Below are positions 4,561 through 28,084 of a stretch of DNA of 64,000 nucleotides, in pieces. Source of the DNA: Calcarisporiella thermophila CBS 279.70. Taxonomy: Eukaryota; Fungi; Calcarisporiellomycota. The stretch covers positions 738,152-802,151 of the forward strand of contig NW_027192191.1 of assembly GCF_041956535.1 (NCBI RefSeq), written 5' to 3'. The notes beneath the pieces are model-generated. The model did not search any database. It was not told where the DNA came from and saw only the letters and a program-made list of their open reading frames with translations. Numbering within the stretch: position 1 is the stretch's first letter; each line of letters starts with the position of its first letter. A program made the translations under genes and the position numbers.

Positions 4561-7500
4561 ATGTCTTCAGAATGCAATTCTTCAACCAGCAATGAACAAT
4601 ATATAACCACTTGGACGTCAACAACGCCTCTATTTGAGCTACCTGGAATTCAGAATCGTGTTACCATCGAAAAAGTTTATTTAAATGGATTGCATGCACT
4701 AAAGCGCTTTGAGATCAAGAACACATCACCTTTTCGCATACTCGTGCGCCTGCGTTCCAACCTGGGAACGCAGGTTGCATTTCAGCCTAATAACGAAAAC
4801 CTCCCCGATCCTGATGCATTTTTTCAAAACACTTCATCCGCAGGGGCTGGGCTTGTGTCATTTCCTCAGACTCCCAGTGACGAAGCGTCTGAGCCCCTAG
4901 CCACATTTCCCTCTACTCCTCCCTCTCCTACTCTCTCCACGAGTATGGACGATGTACCCAATACTTTGCCTGAACACTTCTTCAGTATTGCTACCAACAC
5001 GGTAGCAGCCATGGCCGCGGGAATAAGTGACCGGTTTGGCCACCAGGGCTATCAGTTCAACCAGCTGTTTAACTATGTTAATTATGTGGACGAAATTGAT
5101 ATACCCCCTTTTCAATCGAAGAAAGTTATTCTTGCTTTCCTCCCGGACTCTTCACGCGAACGAAGCAGTCGTCGTACAGCAAATCGAGTAGATAGGTCAG
5201 AAGAATCAAGTGATAGGTCAAGTTTGTTTTCATCGGCCGCCCCTGCCGACTCGGAGGAGACGCATGATATATTTGAAGTCAACGGGTTGCTTCTGTTTTA
5301 CGGGTATATCATGGACGCGACCCAACGTTTTCAGTACAATCATTCTTCAGCAACCTCAGGTCAGCGCACGGGATCAACTTCTGTCGACCCATCTCCCCCT
5401 ACCTCCAACTCACTCTCACGGCGTAACTCCATATCCCAGGAGCGACCACCTCGCTTACAGTTTTCTGAGTCGGAGGAAGGTTCTGCGACATCTGAGCCTC
5501 GGAGGGAGGATGAGCCCGGCTATGGAGCACGCTCTGACTACCAACTGACGGTAAAATTCCGGTCCTCTGTATGCCGTAGCGTCCTCTGGACCGATGTCGG
5601 TGAAACAGGCATCAATTTCGATGACTGTGTCGTGGGAGGTATCTACTTCAAAGATTTTACGGTGTGGAATCGCTCCGAAATTGAGCTTTACTGGCTGCTA
5701 AACACGGTGGACCTCACTAACACTCGGCATGATGACTGGCTACAATTCATCGACTACGATACTGGTGAACCGTTGGACGCAAAGCCCATTCCAAGTTATT
5801 CACATCGTCGAATCCGCATTACCTTCCGACCAAAAGAAACCGGCGAGTTCAATTACGATCTTCAGGTGGAAAATGCCAATGATGCGAGCAATATTGAGCT
5901 GGTGCGGATCAACGCGTCGGTGCGCACTGTCCTCCGCGAAGAATCACTAGTGGTGAGTAGTGGAAACGTGCTGGATTTTGGCGATTGCTGTGCAGGTGTG
6001 GTGGCAAAACAGCAGATAGTGCTCAAGAATGTAAGCGACATGCCATTGGAAATCCGATTCTCGGCCGAAAATGCAGAGGTTGCGTTCGACCTTGGTTCAG
6101 CTCCCGAATTACCCTCTGATCTCTCCTCTTCCCACCAAGATACCGTAAGCTCAGGATTGCACACGCCCACTCTATCTCTAAGTACCATGCTAAGCACAAC
6201 TGACCGGTCTACCCCTGGAAGCGGTGCAAGTTCCCCACGCCCCTCCTCTCCAATATCTTCTTTGAATACACCCCATTCGCTGGGACTCGAGATGGTGAGC
6301 GGGCGATCGGCGAGCAGCTCGGTGGCCGAAAATGGGGAAGGAGAGGCGGACGGCGAATCCATTCCTGAAAGTTTAAAACTCAATCCGAATGCCTCCCCGT
6401 CTTTGGCGAGCAATAGACCATGGGGTAGTTCAGTTGAAGCCGGCACCAGTCGCTCAGCGTCCCGGGCTGAAGGATTACAGATCGATGAACTCTTAATAAA
6501 ACCCGGTTCGGAGCGAACTGTAATCGTGTCCTATCGGCCTGAAAAGGATGCGTCCGCAACCGACTTCCGTGCAGGTCAGCTGGTGCGGCGAAACTTCCGC
6601 ATTATTCTGGACTACGCCACTTATTCTGGCTCATCGGCACCTAGCTATCAGCGAGAAAAGAAGATAATCAAATGTAAGGCAAGAAGTTGCACCTCATTTG
6701 TTGAAGTTGTACCAAAAGAAGTCAACTTCGGCGATACGGACGTTGGCACACTTAAATCGCTCCCGATTGACATTGTGAACCGTTCCGAGCTAACGGCCCG
6801 TGTTGAAATTCGTTTCACCTCAAAAGTGCTCAATTGTTATCAAGGAGAACTGGTTATACCACCTTTACAGTCGATTGAAGTGAAACTGGACCTGTACCCG
6901 CGTAAGGTCAACCCTGATTACCGCAAGGAGCTTACCCTCGTTAACTTGCAAAACCGAGATAACGACCAGATCATCGAAGTACGCAGCAACAATATTGATA
7001 AGAAACGCGTTACATTTCACTCGCTCTTCTACCGCATTCTCACACCGACGGGATCGAATTATATTGATTTCGGATCGATTATTCTTAATTCACCTGCAGT
7101 GCGCACTTTTGTCATTGACAACATTAGCCAGGCGCCGTTAAAGCTAGAGCTCTCATCTTCGCTTCCCGAGGAGGTTGTAGTATATCGGAAGCGAAAACTT
7201 GCTGACGCTGCAGGTCAATTAGAAATCGACCAGGGCAACCTACTCTTTCGTCAGCGGTTGCTAGACTCCATCAGCGAGAAACGGGTGAGCGCTTCAAATT
7301 TTGTTGATAAAGAATCTATCGCTAGTGCATCCAATGGCTCTCCACTGGCTTCAACAAGTCTGAAGAATGGTCCAAGCAGCTCCCCGAGAAAACTAAGCTC
7401 TCCACGCCACACTATTGGCACCAATGCAGATAAGGGCATCGTTTCTCGGACAGAATATCTTGATTTGGCGACATCCGCTCATACCTCTGGCCCGAATGGC

Positions 7501-10500
7501 TCGGCTCGTAACAAGTCGCGTCCTCCCTCGCGTGTCCCTGGTATATCGAAACCATCGCGGCCCGAGTACTTCCTCAAGAAGCTTGTGCAGAATAAACTTG
7601 CCCTTCAAGCAAAAACTGAAATGAACCGAGATGGAGAAGCGGTCCAGGAGCTCTCACCTGATCCTAGGGGACTATCAATGAAGACTCCACTTGCATCCTC
7701 AGCGTCCACTAGAAGCCCTGCCTCGACATCGACAAAATTACGTCCCACTAATAGATTTGCAAGGGCAGGAAGTATATCTGCTGCCAATCCGAAATCATTC
7801 TCTAGATTGAATTTTAACGACTGGGTCCACAACGCCGACATTGCCACCGATGCTCTGATCGATGCACTGGAAGCCAATTGCATCACCTCTCCGCCCCTTT
7901 TCGCAAACTCGTCAGCCGAAGAGAAATATGTGCAGTACCAAGTCGCCTTAAGGCAGGCATTGAACAAAGCGTACGAAAATGGGATTCTTGTCCCTAGCAC
8001 AGAGGTGGTGATACCGCCTCTTTCGCAAGAGGAAATCATTCTCATCTATACTGCCTCCGGCCAGGACAAGGCACACGTACAAGGCATTCCAAAAAGGCAG
8101 AACGCAAGGATATTTCTTCGGCTTGTTAGTTTCGACCGGAATGTCGAGCATGAAGGGCAATTCGACTCTTTGTTACAGACAGACATTACTCAAATCCCAG
8201 TGCGAGAGTTGATGCTCCGGTCCTCACTGTGTCGTTCTATCATGGATATCGGGCAAAAGAACATCAATTTCGGTGTGCTCGACAAGGGCGAGAAACGTAC
8301 CAAAACCATTGTTATTCAGAATCGTAGTGAGGTGCCACTTCTCTACGCTATTCGTAAATCAGGTTCAATTGCATCGGGCGGTATATCCATTGGGTCGGGT
8401 GCATATGGTGTAGTACGAGGGTACGGTAAGAAGGAGGTCGAGTTCTCCTTCAGGCCAAGTCTTGCCGGTCCTGTGCACGAGCGTCTTGTTATTGAGAATA
8501 TTTACGATCGGGAGACTAGCCAGATAGTTTCGGTCAAATCCCAGGTCCGAAAACAATGCCACTTTTTCATCAAGTCACTTGAGCTCGATTTTGGTCCGTG
8601 TGCCGTTGAACAACCGTCCCGCCGCAATCAGCAACTTGTCATCACCAACACGGACCGCCAGGCACGGACTATTGTGGTGCGTGTTGATCCGGAGGAGTTG
8701 AAGTTTGAACGGTGCTTCGGAGAATTGGATTTCACCTTAATGGAGTCACAAGAGTCGCATATAGAGCTAAGCAAAGAGGCAGAAGAGGAGATAGAGAGCA
8801 TCGAGCAGAAACTGAAAATTGCTAAGCGCAAAGGCCGCGAGGACAAAGTGAAGAAGCTGCTGAAAAAACTAGAGAAACTAAAGCGAGGTGTATCCGCAGA
8901 AGAAGAGGCCGAAGATCCAAATGCCCCAATCGCTAGCGAGTCCTCGAATGACACCCATGCAATGACGGGGAATACTGTGGGGTCCACCTCTGCTGAGACA
9001 AGAAAGGGCCAGTCTCCTGAGCTTCCTCCTGAGTCACCGGCTCACCCAGATCCATCGATGACGCCCGCGCAGCCCCCCGCATCCGCCGCAGCATCTTACA
9101 AAATCAGAAAGACGCCCAACGAGCTCACATTTGTCTTAGAGCCACGCGCCACTCGCACCGTTACAATCTGTTTCCGCTCTCGGCTTCGCCTTGATAATAT
9201 CAATGACAACTCCCCCACTTTGCGTGAGATAATCAAGGGCCGGATTTTTGTTCATGAGCATAAGAATACGGATGCAATTAAGAAGGTGGTTTTCCAGGCG
9301 ATCGTTTGCTATGACCATGAGACCTATAAAAAGGCCCTTGTTGAGGCCATGGGCCCAGCAGGCTATGACTCCTTACCCCAATTGGATGTCGCAACCGATT
9401 CATCAAAGCTCCGCCCTGATTCATCAATGAACAAAGTAGAGGAATCACAAGAGCAAATCAGGACCGAGACTGTTGCCGTCTTGCCTCCAGACCTTGATGT
9501 TGGAAGGTTGGGAGCCGAACAAAAGGGAAACTATTATCTTCGGCTGTGCAATCAAACAGATGACAAACTCGACTTCGAGATCATACCCTCTTCATCCGAA
9601 TTTTTCCTCTTTAGCTCTCTTGTTGGTTCCCTTGCTCCCCGCGAGGTGCGTCGACTCGATTTCAGCGTTTTATGCTCCGAAATTGGGCGACACACGCAGC
9701 ACCTGCTCATACGGGATCTAACCCATGGCACTTCTAATGCGACCTTCCGTTTTCACTGCTTGATCCATCGCGTGCAATATTTGAACTTCCCTTCGCTCAA
9801 TACAAATGGAGAGCTGGACCTTGGCCTTTGTTATGTAGATCCCGGGCGCAAATACTCTCAGGTAACCCCGTTACTTGTGGAAAATGTATCAGACGAGGAT
9901 ATCTATATCACCTGTCAGAGCAATCTGTCGCAGCAGGTGTGTATCTTTCTGGATGAAACTGGTAAACGGGGGCAAGTGGTGGATACTTTGCTCAAACGTA
10001 AAAGTGTAATGACTGTGTGGGTTGCATTACGTCCGAATTTGCTGGGAGCATATCTCACAGGAACGTCCACAAGCTCCTCCAATTCGACCTCTACTTCTTC
10101 AGGGCTGGCTGCATCCACTCCAACCTTTAACGACAAAGGTGCATCATCGAGCAGCGAGTGTCGCAAACTGGTCGGCGGAATCAAGTTCTCGGTGTCCGTG
10201 GCAGAATCCAGTCTGAAAGCAGCCGATCAACTCCCCTCCTCTTCTATTGGCGAGGAAGAGCACGTCCTCATGACCACACATACAGTTAAATTTACCTCAC
10301 TAATAGGTCAATCTGTCATGTCCGTTTCGACGACAATGATTGATTTGGGAGTGGTATCACGGCTCGGACAAACAGTATACAACGTGTTCACAGTATATAA
10401 CATGTCTTCGCGATTACCCCTTGAGTATGATGTGGAATGCCCAAGTGGAGCCATCTTAGTGGATCGAAAGGATGGAGTCTTGCGTGGACGAGATGTTGGG

Positions 10501-13500
10501 AAGGTGAGAGAGGATGGTAGCCGTCACTCTCCTCTATTCTCGCCACCCTCCGAAAGTGGTCCTGAAGGAGGTGGAGAGCTCGAAGATTTTGCGGAGGATG
10601 TCACCCAAAGCTCCGCATTAGTGAGCTTTCGCTTCAACTGCACACGCTGGGGCCTCTTCCAGGACAAAATTGTGGTTTCTAACCGCAACAACCGTGACCA
10701 GGAGTTTGAGATTGTGGTGATGTTAATGGCTGATCCGGGCATTTTAAATCACATACCCGATTCGATGCGATGGGATATCAGTGATCTTACCCTAACCAAA
10801 CCCACCAGCGGAGGTACCCCACTGCACGAGATTTGCACAACAAGGGACGAAGGACTGTGTCATTCTGGACGACGAAATCTTCCTGAATTGTGCTGGGATA
10901 ATATACCTCTTCACTTGGAAAAAGCTTCGGTATCCCCTCCCCAGTCAGGGCTGCGGGTGATTTTGGATGAAGCCGAAATCCCCTCTAATGGTACTCAGGT
11001 GGTGCTTGCTGGGTTTGGTGGGGAAATATCAACCATACCTGAGCAATGTATTGAACTCACCAATCTTAGCAAAGAATTGGCTCAGATCGTTCCCTATTGC
11101 AACGTGGACGTCGGTGTCTCTTGGGAAGAGGGGGCTCCAGTGGAAAATAATGTGATTGGTGACGATGAGAATCCCCTGACGTCCTTCGGATTCCGTCGGC
11201 TGGGTTCATCAATGGACCTGCTACCCAACCAAAAAGTTCATCTCCAAATTGGCTGTCCACTGCCACCCAACCTTACTAGTGCCAATATTGAGCAACTACA
11301 GAAAGGCGACAAAATATACTGGACTGGAATTCTCGCCCTCTATGACACCATTTCGCGAACGGCTATAAAAGTGTTTCGGCTCTCAGCCCTACTTGGACAA
11401 CCGCGAGCCGAACTTGTTAGCAAGAAAATCGAACTTGGCAAGGTTGGGCATTTCAATGGCTGGAGAAACGTAGACTTTTCATTCAATGTGCGCAATTTGT
11501 CTGCGCTGCCGTTCATTTATAACTTGAGGCTGCCGAGCGAAGTGATGGTTCGGAACTCGATTTTGGAGAGTTGGCACTCCGTTGCAAATCAGTGGATTAT
11601 TCCGCCATGGGAAGAACAGACAGTGTACGCTACCTTGCAGCCGCGCAAACTTTCTGATCCCACTCAGCCTGGAGAACGAACGCAAATACTGAGTGTGGTT
11701 AACGCCCGCGACCCATCTCAAGTGATGGACTTGAAAATTAGACTTCGGCTAACAGTGTTCGAACTAAGTTTCGCCAATCTTGAAGAGAATGGTGAGCTGC
11801 ACCTTCCCCCGCTACAACACCCGCTCCTAGCATCAGCCGTGCCTTGTGACGCCTGGTTTACGGTGATGAACACGACTGACGATGATGTTAGGTTTGATAT
11901 AGGGGCAGAGCTCAACCCAGAAGTGTCAGATTATATCAAGATGGAAGTCCTTTCCCGCTTTTCTAATACCCCACTGAAAGGTGGCGTCTCGCTCAGCCCC
12001 CATGGCAAAATCGAGGTGAGGCTTCGCGTCCACCCAAGGGAAGATTCACGCTTGCCGAAGAATGCGTTCCATCTCACTAACCCAGCGGGGATTTATTTTG
12101 GCAAGCTTCGTGTATCCACGCGACAATCACCCGCAGATAAACCGTTTTCAGAGCTCCCAGGAGATTCGGAGACACGACCTAGCGATATTGTTGATATTCC
12201 AATACGGGGAGTACTTATCGAAGGCCCTGTGTTTAGTATCTCGCGGGATCATATCGAATTCCGCAGTGCATGGCTTGGTCTATCTGACAGTGAACAGAGC
12301 GAAGGTGAGGACGAGGGAGGGAAGCATCCAACTAAGAGAAGTCCTCTCATGCCCTCGATGTTGGATCACAAGCAAATTGAAACGGTTGTCATTACGAACC
12401 ACAATCCCAAATTACCGCTTGAGTTTTCAGTGAGCCTGAACGGTCCGATGGAGACCCCCCTCGATGAGTTAATCGATATCTCTCCCCTCTCGGAGGAAGG
12501 TCGTGGTTTCGTGGAGCCGGGTGGAAAGCTAACACTCTCTGTGCAATTTCTCGACCCCCAGATTGTCATTTCAGACAGCATTAAAGTGTGCATCCAGGAT
12601 ATCAATTCCCTCTCTGGACTCAAGCAAGTGTTAACTGTCAACGTCAGCGCCCGCAAGACGACTAACAAGCGCATCGATTATGGGCTGGATGGAGGAGATG
12701 GCACACAATCTGAGCATGCTAGGCGGAGGTTACACCACGAGGGTGTCAGTACCGCCATGTCTCCTCGCGTTGCCTACGAGTGTCCATGTATCACGCTACG
12801 TGGATGCAAGCGAATATCGGATGGAGGCTTTGGTGGACGATATGAGCTCGATCTTGGCCAGCAGGATTTGGGGGCAACTAATATTGTTAAGAAGTTGACG
12901 TTGGAAAACACTTCTAATGAACCTATCTCCTACCGCGTTAAGACTGTGAATGATGCGGATCGCTCATGGCTCAGCATCAGCCCTGCCGAGGGTACTCTGG
13001 ATCCTCCGAGTGAAGCCGCAGACTCCGAGAACGAGGTCGCATGCAACGATGGATACTCGTCGACTCAAACGATTACCATTAGCTTCTCTGCCGCAACACG
13101 AAACATTTACTCCACCTATTTGCTCATCGAGAGTGTGGATAATCCGGCTGACACTAAGACGGTGCGAGTGACCATGGAGGTGGTCGCGAGGCAAAATATT
13201 CGCCGAGGGATTGCATCGGGCGGATCGGCGGAGAGTAATAGAGTTTTCGATGTGTACGTGAATGGGGTTGACTCGGAGAAGACGTGCATCGAGATGCTGA
13301 GTCTATACTATGGTCACGAATATACCACTCGCAGCATGGTTATCCATAATTATGAACCCATGCCGATGGAGTTTGCCCTCAAGACGAACTTGTCTCATGA
13401 CGACCCTACGGAGATCCTGTTTTCCACCTCGCGCACCTCGGCCAAACTATTCAAGACCCTAACAGTCGATGGGTATTCAAGCGCGCGTGTCTACATTCGC

Positions 13501-14894
13501 TTCAGGCCGTTCCCCTCTGCCGATATTAGGGCAATGCTTGCCAATGGAGAAGCGCGTGATATCGACGCTGTGGAAGAGAAACGCCTTGAAATATATGTTA
13601 ATTGTCGGCTCGTAAAGGATTTTCAACAGATTGTATTCCTAAAAGCAGAGTGTCGAATGCCAGCAATGGAAGTGTATTGGCTCGAGACGGAGGCCTTTGT
13701 TGGTGTGTAATCTTTTTCGGAAGCATTTCTACACCAAACTTCAACCCACTAATATTTACATAACACTTTTCACCTAGGTACAATTTCAAGATTATTGACT
13801 ACTGACTCCGAGGAAAGTGACTGGGAGATCCAGTTTTCAGAAAAAGAGCGTCCGCTCATCGTCTGCAATCTCCTGGACATACCACTTGAATATGAGATCG
13901 TCAATGATACGAGGTATTTCTTAATGGAGCCAACCGATGCCGATAAGACGGTCGAGTCTTTTGGCCGTCGAGAAGTCAAAGTTTCTCCAAATATAAAAGC
14001 TCTATTGAAGAATGCGGATTCTCTATGGAGGGTGAGTTAAACACATGCTTTCATTCATTTAATTTTTATTTTGCTAATATAGCTTCGGTCGACTTTTATA
14101 ATACAGGAAAAATATATCCAAGAAAATGTGACCATCTATAATCGTAAACGACCCCTTGAAAACTATTGGCTACCGCTTCGTATCAGCTTCGGACAGACTT
14201 CCCATTTCCAGATGTCATCCGGCTATAAGAGCTCATACGCATTCAGTATGCTCGAGAATCATGTTGTGTACTTTTTGGGAGATTTCAACATGAATGCGAC
14301 CCTATTGCTGACCCAAGAAGACGAGGTACGATAACCCCCTGGACCGAATATATTCAACTATTTCCTGACATAACTATCCTTATTTTACGCTGTAGATGAC
14401 CCAAAAGAAAATTGCTGATTTGGAGTTTCAGTACCATTTCATCGTCGATCAATTGGTCTACTATGGAACCATTAAGACTGGCGAGAACTTTATCCAGCTG
14501 GCTTGCCTTCTCTTTGGGTATTTATTGCATTAAATCAATTTATATTTAGTCTTGATTCTCAACTGGCTATTTTATTATTTAGCTCGGCACTTGGACACGA
14601 CGTGTTCAAGGAATATGCCCCTTCCTATCTTAAAGCTACCGATACAGACCAGCGTATCTGGCCCCCTGTACTGGCTAAATGGGTATGTTGAACATTCCGG
14701 CACTCCTGCCCCCATGAAAAATACTAACCACAGTTTGGAATTCCTAGGTTTCGCTATTACATTATTTCATTAGCTTTTTCCCATACGAGAACCCAATTCT
14801 TCATACTCTGAAGCGATTGCATGCATCCTTGATTCTGGTTGATGGAGGTTCTGGGAGTGGAGGAAGTTCTCAGCGGAAGAAGCCTCAAGGGTGA
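4561..14894 (+). CDS. Giant (>3300 aa) protein with many ASH/PapD-like Ig-fold repeats
   Basis: First exon of about 9.1 kb (3049-aa ORF), then five short exons spliced in frame (starting about 13778, 14107, 14396, 14583 and 14749) to ...QRKKPQG* at 14892-14894. Recurrent [IL]DFGxx...[VI]xNxS motifs. Confidence 0.85.
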
Positions 14895-24016: not shown

Positions 24017-25807
24017 TCAATTATACCAGGAACCGCGCGCTGATCCATCGGCGGTCAACCCAACCTCTATGCCTTTTTGGATGAATTCATCCTGTGCATC
24101 ATGGAGCGTCCAATCTCCCTGTCTATCGCCTCTGAGATCTCGCAGCTCTTTTATAGATTGCACCCACTGTAAAATATCCTCCTTCGAATAGACCGTCCAT
24201 TTGGCTTCCTCTAGTAACTGCCGTAATCGGGCAGGATGAATTGCCGCTCCACAATACGTGTTTCTCCAGCAGATCGTAAGAAGCAGCCAGCCAAAGATTT
24301 CTTCTTGGAAGGGAAGAGGCAGATCCCACTGCTCGACCCATAAGGGAATCTCAAAAGCAGCCCAGTTCTCCGCACTCCAACGGTGAAAATGATCGAAGAG
24401 GTCAAGGTGCGTGCGAGTAGAGCCAAACCGTCTCAGTGGCTTAATATTTCCTAATGCAGCAAGCAACAAATAACGTATCCCTGTCGCCAAAAGATTTCCC
24501 CAGGCAATCGCGGTAGCTCCTGTAGATTCCGTTGCAGCCCATAATGAAATAGCAAGTCCAGCAGCACCAAAAGTCCAACCAACAATGACGATCAACCAAG
24601 CCAAAGGTAAGCGGACACGCAAAGCTCTGATGCCTGGGGACAATGCAGCATGATTACAATGCCACCATCGACTAATCTTGCCAGTCGCCTTCGATCGTGC
24701 AATAGCCAAGCCAGTAGCACCTCGAGTTGGTATAAGCAGGTTATTTGTCGATTGCAACACGACAGCCGCTTTCCTGTTAGGTTGAGCTGTGTATAAGAAT
24801 TCCGACAGATCAGCCACCAACAAGGGTGTGGGCAGCGTCTCCAAAGCAACCCAACAGGCAAGCCCGACTCCGAAGGAAAGCAGCACAGAACCAACCCCAA
24901 CGGCCCATAAAGGACCACTACTAATAATTAGTGCTAATATCCAGACTATGATGCCTTGAAGACAAGCCCAAAAGGCAACCCAACTTCCACCGATGAAAAC
25001 ATGGACTGCGGCAGCGGATATGACAGTTTTCTTACTCCTGGCTTTTCCAGAACGCAGTTGCATCCACCACCTCTCGTGGCTATATGTCCAAGAGTCTAGA
25101 GAAGACGAACGTACAGACCTGGATGGATCGGCCAATGGCCTCACAGTCCATTTTTCTCCGTCCCAAGTCACACTTTCCCAAGTTAATTCAGCTTCCGAAT
25201 GGGCCATGCCAAGATCCCAGTATAGGCGGGCGCCAGCCATGTCGATAGCATAGGCAGGACAGTTTGAAGCAAGAAGGTGTATCTGAGCCAATTCAGCACC
25301 AATATTCCCAAGCACTCCGAGGCCAACCCTCAACTGCCATCCACCTCCAAGTGTAGCTCCACAAAGAAGCGTTCCAATATACGCGTTTAGCACATTGTAA
25401 CTTGCTCTTTTCACAAAGCTATTTCCTAGTGCTCCTACGATAGGAGCAATCCAGCTTGCACGGTCAATAATCGGGCCAGGAACATTACCATCAGCTGCCA
25501 GAGACATTTTGGGTATCTGGGCAGCAAACAACGTTTGAATCGCTACTTGCCACCAATTTGTTAAGCCAATAAAGGAAGAAACTGGAAAACTATCATGAGA
25601 AGGATGACTCGAAATGTTAGGACTGGTAGCATAATGTGTTATGAATCTAATTAGTTCAGAGAATTGTGCAGCATCCATTGCTATTTCCTTGCGCACCGAC
25701 CCCATAACCAGCGTCCTTTTCTTTTTTTCTGCACTCGAATTGCGGGAGCGAGAAAACAAGGACAATAATAAACGCCAACGCAAATTGAAACATGATGGGC
25801 TGCTCAT
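24017..25807 (-). CDS. Orphan multi-pass membrane protein, intronless (true start may be the Met of MGSVRKE or MDAAQF)
   Basis: Uninterrupted 596-codon ORF in AT-rich flanks, with several long hydrophobic Gly/Trp-rich segments. No family recognised. Confidence 0.8.
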   Translation of the reverse strand: MSSPSCFNLRWRLLLSLFSRSRNSSAEKKKRTLVMGSVRKEIAMDAAQFSELIRFITHYATSPNISSHPSHDSFPVSSFIGLTNWWQVAIQTLFAAQIPKMSLAADGNVPGPIIDRASWIAPIVGALGNSFVKRASYNVLNAYIGTLLCGATLGGGWQLRVGLGVLGNIGAELAQIHLLASNCPAYAIDMAGARLYWDLGMAHSEAELTWESVTWDGEKWTVRPLADPSRSVRSSSLDSWTYSHERWWMQLRSGKARSKKTVISAAAVHVFIGGSWVAFWACLQGIIVWILALIISSGPLWAVGVGSVLLSFGVGLACWVALETLPTPLLVADLSEFLYTAQPNRKAAVVLQSTNNLLIPTRGATGLAIARSKATGKISRWWHCNHAALSPGIRALRVRLPLAWLIVIVGWTFGAAGLAISLWAATESTGATAIAWGNLLATGIRYLLLAALGNIKPLRRFGSTRTHLDLFDHFHRWSAENWAAFEIPLWVEQWDLPLPFQEEIFGWLLLTICWRNTYCGAAIHPARLRQLLEEAKWTVYSKEDILQWVQSIKELRDLRGDRQGDWTLHDAQDEFIQKGIEVGLTADGSARGSWYN

Positions 25808-26986: not shown

Positions 26987-28084
26987 ATGTTTCCATCTCT
27001 TCGTCTTCTCCTGAACGAAACTTACTCCATTCTCGCACACGTAGATATCCACATGTACTTTGAAAATGCTTATGCGCTTCTTATAGGGACAGGTGCTAAT
27101 GATAATGGCGATGTTGACCCTGAATATGAAAGCTTTATAGAGGATGCTAAATGGCTTAAAGATATATTAACAGATGAATCGCGTTGTGCTTATCCTCCCG
27201 GCAATGTGCATCTCATTTTGGGTAGGGAAGCAACAAGGAAAAATATAATTCTTGGATTAGAGAGACTGGCTTCAACGTCAAATGAGGATTCGACGGTCCT
27301 AGTATTATTTTCGGGGCATGGGTTCCGGAAAGGTTCCAATCAAACTTATTTAGTTCCCACTGGAATGCGCTCCAATGACAATCCCGAACAGTGTGCGATT
27401 TCTGGTGATGTATTCTATAATCTCATTAAATCCATACCAAGTAAAAAAATATTACTTCTACTGAATTGCTGCTATGCCGGTGGAGTTATTCCTAATTTGC
27501 TACGATCTGAAGGTGAACTAGCTCTTGGTAATACACCACTTACTGAAGGGCAAATTGCCCAGCTCAGGGATGGTAAGGGCTTTGCTGTTTTGTCGTCCTC
27601 GCATCCAAATGAAATAACTAAAACGGGTAGACCCGGCGGAGAGCATGGCTCTCTATCGTCAAAATCATACAGTGTTTTTGTGATGGGTGTCATTGCGGCC
27701 TTATCTGGATGGAATCAGAAGTCTGACGAGAACTGTGTCCGTGTCTTGGATCTGATTACTGCATGCAAAGAATATGTGAAGGAAAAATCGAAGGGAAAGC
27801 AGAACCCTTATGCGGATTTCCATCACCTCGATAATTTTCCTGTTTCTTACTTCAGTGATTACAAAGAAAAACGCAAGAGAACAAGGTGGTTCCTTGGTAT
27901 GGACAGAGACTTCATTATCGATAGTGATAGTGATAGTGATAACAGTGAAGAAGAGGATATGCCTATGACCACCTCGCATGTTTCTCAGGTGGCTAGAACC
28001 AGAAACGCCCATGCGACAAATGGCGGCGTTGTCATATCTGGAAACTTTAATATGAATAACGGAAGAGTCCACTTCGGACGATAA
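26987..28084 (+). CDS. Caspase-like peptidase C14 (bacterial-type), intronless, with acidic linker and C-terminal N/G-rich motif; likely start ATG 27053
   Basis: FENAYALLIG, ATRKNIILGLERLA, VLFSGHG (His at 27317), LLLLNCCYAGG (Cys at 27470), VLSSSHPNE, KQNP. Confidence 0.9.
   Translation: MFPSLRLLLNETYSILAHVDIHMYFENAYALLIGTGANDNGDVDPEYESFIEDAKWLKDILTDESRCAYPPGNVHLILGREATRKNIILGLERLASTSNEDSTVLVLFSGHGFRKGSNQTYLVPTGMRSNDNPEQCAISGDVFYNLIKSIPSKKILLLLNCCYAGGVIPNLLRSEGELALGNTPLTEGQIAQLRDGKGFAVLSSSHPNEITKTGRPGGEHGSLSSKSYSVFVMGVIAALSGWNQKSDENCVRVLDLITACKEYVKEKSKGKQNPYADFHHLDNFPVSYFSDYKEKRKRTRWFLGMDRDFIIDSDSDSDNSEEEDMPMTTSHVSQVARTRNAHATNGGVVISGNFNMNNGRVHFGR

Follow-up and report, generated by a model that had tools for sequence, protein, structure and literature searches.

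A caspase gene in this stretch of the genome of the fungus Calcarisporiella thermophila CBS 279.70 ends in a short motif that recurs at the N-termini of NOD-like receptors (NLRs) encoded elsewhere in the same genome. The stretch, hereafter the window, has 64,000 nucleotides and is part of contig 1 of a 28-Mb assembly (G000:C1:738152-802151); the species is a thermophile of zygomycete grade, placed by NCBI taxonomy in the Calcarisporiellomycota. We propose that the last ~34 residues of the caspase are the effector-side copy of a short homotypic signalling motif, the NLR N-termini being the receptor-side copies, and put the probability of this reading at roughly 0.6. Judging from the comparisons below, the tail is very probably a functional shared signalling motif of some kind, and by analogy with known fungal and bacterial systems amyloid-like templating is probably the way in which it works. 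The parts of the gene are the following.

26987..28084, + strand: the caspase gene, a single-exon open reading frame (ORF) of 365 aa, stop included in the coordinates (protein P0001); the database holds an identical 365-aa product.
27071..27829, + strand: Peptidase_C14 (caspase) catalytic domain, aa 29-281 (Pfam PF00656, 6.2e-12).
27317..27319, + strand: catalytic His111 in an SGHG motif; column H111 is invariant in the homologue alignment A1.
27470..27472, + strand: catalytic Cys162 in an NCCYAGG motif; column C162 is nearly invariant in A1, while the adjacent Cys161 varies.
27830..27979, + strand: variable linker, aa 282-331, holding an acidic run at aa 312-324; not conserved relative to the paralogue P0002, predicted local distance difference test (pLDDT) <50.
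27980..28081, + strand: putative C-terminal signalling motif, aa 332-365, with its core at aa 340-361; aligns with the NLR N-termini.

The protein belongs to peptidase family C14. The PF00656 profile matches it with 46.1 bits against a cut-off of 21.4, His111 and Cys162 are both conserved, and a Foldseek search with the AlphaFold model, in which the caspase core is confident (pLDDT 80-97), returned the MALT1 paracaspase, metacaspases and caspase-9 at E values of about 1e-10. These relatives came from the fold search; a sequence search of the PDB with the caspase gave no match. Residues 292-365 have a pLDDT below 50 in the monomer model, where the tail appears unstructured, as is expected for amyloid signalling motifs. 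An earlier reading, made from the letters alone (the sequence-only reading), had described a caspase with an acidic linker and a terminal 26-aa segment rich in N and G and free of proline, and letters, Pfam and composition agree with that description. It had placed linker and tail at 27921-28084; the tail was exact, but the start lay one base late, the acidic run beginning at 27920. This run occupies codons 312-324 (27920..27958), is encoded in part by three copies of GATAGT and reads DSDSDSDNSEEED. The terminal segment corresponds to the last 26 codons (28004..28081) and contains six N, five G, three V, two F and one I, with no P, K or L at all, so that N and G together make up 11 of its 26 residues (42%). 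At the other end of the gene, the first 22 codons (26987..27052, + strand) have no counterpart in the paralogues and are modelled with a pLDDT of about 40; since the paralogues start at the equivalent of Met23 (27053), the true start of the caspase may be Met23.

Searching the genome directly with the 64-aa caspase tail recovered only the tail itself. The NLR partner was found by listing the NB-ARC loci and reading the sequence upstream of them. Pfam NB-ARC has 14 matches in the genome; Pfam NACHT (PF05729) gave no match above the cut-off there. The open frame of each NB-ARC exon begins ~60-70 codons ahead of the P-loop, and at least 11 of the loci have, 100-250 nt further upstream, an ATG-led mini-exon of ~30 aa that bears the motif. 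The mini-exons end at a GT donor and an in-frame AG acceptor precedes the NB-ARC exon. Their peptides take the form M-S-x-Q-T-S-x(3)-G-N-V-H-A-E-x-G-A-x-I-x-x-G-N-x-x-Y-N and can be aligned with the caspase tails, beginning at the SQ dipeptide (alignment A3). Four annotated proteins, P0031, P0032, P0033 and P0036 (VTP21DRAFT_1062, 7781, 9796 and 10838), open with exactly these peptides, and the public annotation independently agrees with the splice reading of the mini-exons. A matching motif at the N-termini of NLRs, which had been anticipated from the caspase alone, is therefore present at 11 NB-ARC loci, these four models included. Exons were used individually and full-length work was done on the annotated proteins P0031-P0036; the exon junctions of the NB-ARC locus L010 and of the patatin locus L037 were placed from GT..AG sites alone.

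The annotated NLRs consist of the motif, an NB-ARC domain from about aa 66, DUF7779 and TPR_10/12 repeats, and have no other N-terminal domain; the motif therefore makes up the entire N-terminal 'domain' of the receptor. It stands at the extreme N-terminus of both NB-ARC-TPR and NB-ARC-ankyrin NLRs of this genome. Some of the receptor loci (L015, L016, L020 and L036) are degraded. A cluster of NLR genes at G000:C2:45-67 kb (L016, L022, L028, L023) carries a variant of the M-Q-S-S-S-I type and contains degraded copies as well as an orphan motif exon, L028, downstream of which no NB-ARC was detected; an ankyrin-repeat ORF sits between the NLR genes of this cluster.

Support for a motif common to both sides comes from a hidden Markov model (HMM) built from ten NLR-side peptides and no effector sequence. 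Run against 3963 six-frame segments (208 thousand residues) from the window and all fetched loci, it ranked the two intact caspases directly after the training loci, with 15.8 and 15.6 bits (E about 0.005, Z = 10000). The second of these is the window caspase, scored as the full-length ORF segment and aligned over aa 342-361. They are followed by L018, an NB-ARC locus outside the training set (12.2 bits), and the best remaining segment reaches 8.6 bits. A weak motif-like match of 8.6 bits lies at about position 1916 of L006 (G000:C39). Taken in isolation, the window tail scores 17.8 bits, and 0 of 5000 composition-preserving shuffles reached this score (best 14.3); the isolated tail of the paralogue likewise outscored all of its 5000 shuffles. 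The similarity between tail and NLRs depends on residue order beyond composition. A six-frame search of the whole genome with the full motif profile gave 16 matches only: the 11 exons that precede NB-ARC exons, an orphan exon, the tails of the three caspases and the N-terminus of a patatin. With the NLR-only profile, the only non-NLR matches in the whole genome were the patatin (28.4 bits) and the tail of P0002 (19.1 bits, E 0.046). In pairwise comparisons (Smith-Waterman with shuffles) the window tail pairs best with the first exon of L010 (z 4.5; 2/1000); it reaches z 3.6 with the patatin motif and z 3.2 with P0036, and a terminal hydrophobic-x-F-G element is common to the tail and the N-terminus of P0036.

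The tail is also conserved between this caspase and its paralogue P0002. Three caspase paralogues are found in the genome: the window gene, P0002 (C1:900999-902051) and a copy on contig 39 (L003 1498..2547; G000:C39:19128-20177). The contig 39 copy has an in-frame TGA at a conserved Arg codon, directly after the AVISSS stretch, as well as a divergent tail and a Tc1/mariner-like transposase remnant directly upstream. Between the window caspase and P0002, 17 of 40 tail positions are identical, which is about the identity of the catalytic domains (47%), whereas the linker cannot be aligned. A full HMMER scan of 1.8 billion representatives returned 6216 homologues, and the nearest named ones belong to Jimgerdemannia flammicorona and Endogone sp. 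(Endogonales). In a quick maximum-likelihood tree, 15 fungal-type caspases form a single clade (approximate likelihood ratio test, SH-aLRT, 100) apart from 50 prokaryote-type rows. All tails inspected in the fungal clade are rich in N, G and S, and acidic linkers are frequent; two Jimgerdemannia proteins lacking such a tail (P0006 and P0008) are not among the sequences of the tree. The expectation that the motif would be conserved in homologous caspases has thus been borne out by the P0002 tail, with analogous tails in the named Endogonales members of the clade, and tails of this analogous kind would fit a lineage-specific co-evolution.

A further effector with the motif is a patatin-like phospholipase gene (L037 1495..2941; G000:C16:694917-696363). 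Here the motif lies on the first exon and is N-terminal; after an in-frame intron, in the GT..AG reading, come the patatin-like phospholipase signatures GGGxRG and GTSTGG, and the third exon matches Pfam Patatin with 31.7 bits. The patatin motif is closer to the NLR side (z 7-8) than to the caspase tails (z 3.6-5.2). None of the effectors with the motif is adjacent to a matching NLR. There are many receptor loci and few effectors (two intact caspases, one broken copy and one patatin), thus a network of the many-to-few type. We would give even odds to the full picture suggested by this arrangement, in which at least 11 NB-ARC receptors with TPR or ankyrin repeats all feed, by means of a single self-templating motif of ~30 aa, into two caspases and a patatin lipase whose genes lie elsewhere in the genome. 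Such a layout would be of the hub type, much like an inflammasome, in a lineage described as NLR-poor; its motif family would differ from HRAM, PP, sigma and PUASM, and its caspase clade is shared with Endogonales and has prokaryote-type relatives.

The mechanism that we envisage is modelled on the NWD2/HET-S pair of fungi and on the pairs with bacterial amyloid signalling sequences (BASS). When the TPR or ankyrin repeats bind a ligand, the NB-ARC domains would oligomerise, and the N-terminal motifs clustered in this way would adopt a beta-arch, amyloid-like fold. This template could then impose the same fold on the otherwise disordered tail of the caspase. The resulting polymer would gather caspase domains and activate them by induced proximity, while the patatin lipase might be recruited in parallel through its N-terminal motif. 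By analogy with the model systems, the output of such a relay would be cell death or an immune response. A complex prediction with two copies of the tail (aa 326-365) and two copies of P0031 residues 1-40 gave a score of 0.01 and no answer, and is evidence neither way.

Daskalov 2015 is the work reportedly named together with the NWD2/HET-S-type NLR-effector amyloid pairs of fungi (HRAM, PP, sigma, PUASM). The amyloid signature of NLRs was established for NWD2/HET-S and then extended to PP, sigma, PUASM and the bacterial BASS (PMC9815663; 10.1101/2020.01.06.895854). Fungal NLR/effector amyloid pairs, as surveyed by Wojciechowski 2022 (PMC9815663), include non-adjacent ones and cases with many NLRs per effector; the motifs come from Ascomycota and Basidiomycota and the effectors are HeLo, HELL, SesA, SesB and PNP_UDP, and the text of that paper makes no mention of caspases, C14 or Mucoromycota. 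Like these pairs, the system described here has a short motif, rich in N, G and hydrophobic residues, that makes up the whole N-terminus of the NLR and recurs, following a flexible linker, at one end of a separate effector protein, and the many-NLR-to-few-effector, non-adjacent layout has its parallels among them. It differs in that the effector is a C14 caspase (with a patatin), the host belongs to the Calcarisporiellomycota, the genes are unlinked and no Pfam model of a known amyloid motif matches.

BASS motifs occur on bacterial Bell, TIR and CHAT (metacaspase-like) proteins that are paired with NB-ARC or NACHT NLRs (Dyrka 2020, 10.1101/2020.01.06.895854), and Bab/Agp BASS11 is a further case (10.1101/2024.11.07.622273). 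They measure ~25 aa, favour N, G, Q, V and I and have little P, K and L (10.1101/2020.01.06.895854), and the composition of the caspase tail agrees with this description. In both systems a protease of the caspase superfamily carries a C-terminal amyloid-type motif that is matched by the N-terminus of an NB-ARC-TPR protein, but the bacterial protease is a CHAT protein with adjacent and collinear genes, while here it is a Peptidase_C14 of a eukaryote and the genes are dispersed. Of the features by which amyloid signalling pairs are recognised, a short N-terminal motif on the NLR and the same motif on a separate effector behind a variable linker are both present; gene adjacency, which is usual and not obligatory, is absent. 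As read from the genes, this layout is what defines NLR amyloid signalling at the level of the genome. What is new here is the effector class for fungi, a caspase, together with the lineage and an unclassified motif, all as a variant of that signalling.

Filaments of animals activate MALT1 or initiator caspases by proximity. The likeness to such platforms (the apoptosome, the ASC filaments of inflammasomes, CARMA1-BCL10-MALT1) lies in an NLR or STAND (signal transduction ATPase with numerous domains) sensor, a nucleated polymer and a caspase-fold protease that is activated by proximity, an activation that for the fungal protein is a prediction; the MALT1 paracaspase and caspase-9 are, moreover, the best structural matches of the window caspase model. 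The difference lies in the adaptor, which would here be a ~30-aa beta-type motif and not a CARD or PYD domain of the death fold. Fungi also have NLRs with a fused CHAT or S8 protease and clusters of gasdermin and protease genes (PMC10197012), which have in common with our case a caspase-related protease under the control of an NLR. There, however, the protease is part of the receptor or clustered with gasdermin, while in C. thermophila it is a separate protein that is coupled only via the common terminal motif; no candidate for a downstream substrate emerged, as a search of the genome for gasdermin (PF04598) gave no match, which does not prove its absence. Among NCBIfam models, the nearest to the catalytic domain is 'caspase, EACC1-associated type' (NF047832), which links the protein to the two-gene EACC1-caspase systems of multicellular bacteria (PMC7159879; 10.1101/2025.11.14.688446). 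Membership in such a system is not supported: the score of 67.5 bits is below the cut-off of 140 bits, EACC1 (PF19953) was not detected in the genome, although its absence is not proven, and a neighbouring 596-aa membrane ORF is unrelated to EACC1.

Several observations weigh against our reading. A Pfam scan of both motif sides, in which E values as high as 10 were admitted, gave no match to any amyloid-motif family, HET-s, Ses_B, NACHT_sigma and RHIM included, and an NCBIfam scan of the motif gave no relevant match. The link to the named families HRAM, PP, sigma or BASS that the sequence-only reading had drawn finds no support in these scans; the motif does have an h-x-h-G-N-x-h pattern like that of HRAM, which we take to be a lead only. 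The genes are unlinked, with the NB-ARC loci nearest to the window caspase about 230 kb away, and the NB-ARC locus that lies about 10 kb from P0002 has a divergent N-terminus. The patatin carries its copy at the N-terminus, which is unusual for an effector. The window tail matches the NLRs less well than the paralogue tail does and was outside the 15 first-look candidates of the NLR-only genome search. A profile of Endogonales tails has an NLR exon as its top match in Calcarisporiella, with an E value of only 0.22, and the surroundings of two Jimgerdemannia loci yielded no partner motif; the Endogonales tails are of the same kind as the Calcarisporiella tail, while identity of the motif is not demonstrated. 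Lastly, two bacterial pairs, P0022 with its nSTAND1 neighbour and P0029 with its NB-ARC neighbour, gave shuffle z values of only 1.1-2.0, which is at the level of composition.

The alternative that survives best accepts the motif as a real adaptor between receptor and effector but has it act by a homotypic contact that is finite and not amyloid, for instance beta-strand augmentation in an NLR oligomer, and forgoes a self-propagating cross-beta polymer. We consider this unlikely, though it deserves to be taken seriously. Known effector-associated domains are helical, death-like folds, whereas the motif has ~30 aa, a pattern of N/G and hydrophobic residues without Pro, Lys or Leu, disorder in the monomer and terminal positions as in BASS and the fungal amyloid motifs, all of which would favour amyloid. 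On the other hand, the sequence comparisons establish sharing and constraint only and not the adopted state, the motif matches no known amyloid-motif family, and bacterial conflict systems couple likewise through many effector-associated domains that are not amyloid (PMC7159879).

A second alternative, which appears improbable to us, concerns the window copy alone: it could be a drifting paralogue whose tail no longer pairs productively with any NLR, the working effector being P0002 (G000:C1:900999-902051). The tail of P0002 is a far better match to the NLR N-termini, with z 5.7-7.2 against P0032, P0033 and L010 compared to 1.8-4.5 for the window tail, P0002 alone of the caspases was recovered by the NLR-only genome search, and the third copy on contig 39 already has its in-frame TGA. 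Yet the window ORF is intact with a conserved catalytic dyad, its tail outscores all 5000 shuffles, and it has best partners of its own in L010 and P0036, including the hydrophobic-x-FG end in common with the latter, a pattern that fits sub-specialisation and not decay. A chance origin of the tail, as a disordered extension of low complexity without specific function, is hardly credible and already disfavoured. In its favour, many eukaryotic proteins have N/G-rich tails, and the motif is both short and unmatched by any curated family. Against it, the tail ranks first among non-NLR sequence in an order-specific comparison with an independently built NLR profile, the 16 genome matches all lie at protein termini of NLRs, caspases and the patatin, and it is the tail and not the linker that is conserved.

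An effector tail that is shared with NLRs would matter for several reasons. Almost the entire set of NB-ARC proteins in this zygomycete-grade thermophile bears one motif, which recurs on caspases and a patatin; for Mucoromycotina, a dearth of NLRs has been noted (review, PMC9119436). Amyloid NLR-effector signalling has so far been described from Ascomycota, some Basidiomycota and filamentous bacteria (PMC9815663; 10.1101/2020.01.06.895854), and the lists of fungal effectors comprise pore-formers, hydrolases and PNP_UDP but no caspases (PMC9815663). Our search of the literature on amyloid signalling in connection with caspases or metacaspases, with Mucoromycota or with the species by name did not turn up this system, and the earlier suggestion that the architecture is uncharacterised is upheld by this search as regards a fungal caspase with such a motif. 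If the motif forms amyloid, the task that CARD or PYD filaments perform in animals, the activation of caspase-fold proteases, would fall to a prion-like polymer in the fungus, and amyloid signalling would extend to early-diverging fungi. It would at the same time offer a compact case, a 34-aa peptide on a 365-aa protease, for the induced-proximity activation of a non-animal caspase.

The prokaryote-type homologues of the caspase are a lead to how such relays arose, since relatives of this type adjoin STAND NTPases. They have tails rich in G, N and V, and two of them stand beside STAND NTPases with similar stretches. The similarity to these neighbours does not go beyond composition, so it is a lead for the origin only, and we do not claim matched motifs in the bacterial caspase/STAND pairs (z 1.1-2.0); nothing could be learned from the neighbourhoods of P0009, P0010, P0021 and P0027. 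A metagenome-assembled contig (L042, JBFOMR010017048.1) carries a prokaryote-type caspase whose tail is rich in G and N; after it come an nSTAND1-AAA_16-FGE-sulfatase protein, then a reverse transcriptase and bAvd, which looks like a diversity-generating retroelement beside a STAND-caspase pair. A JGI metagenome contig of prokaryote type (L047) has three genes in a row, a patatin and then two caspases, the first of these two with a G/V-rich tail, the same pairing of patatin and caspase as in C. thermophila.

Two other ORFs of the window were noted. The 596-aa membrane ORF mentioned above (24017..25807, - strand) is rich in Trp and Gly, multi-pass, without a Pfam family and head-to-head with the caspase; it was considered as a conserved partner of the caspase and rejected as unsupported, being present in a single copy in the genome and not beside the caspase paralogues. 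Further away, an uninterrupted ORF of 3049 aa occupies positions 4561..13710 on the + strand.

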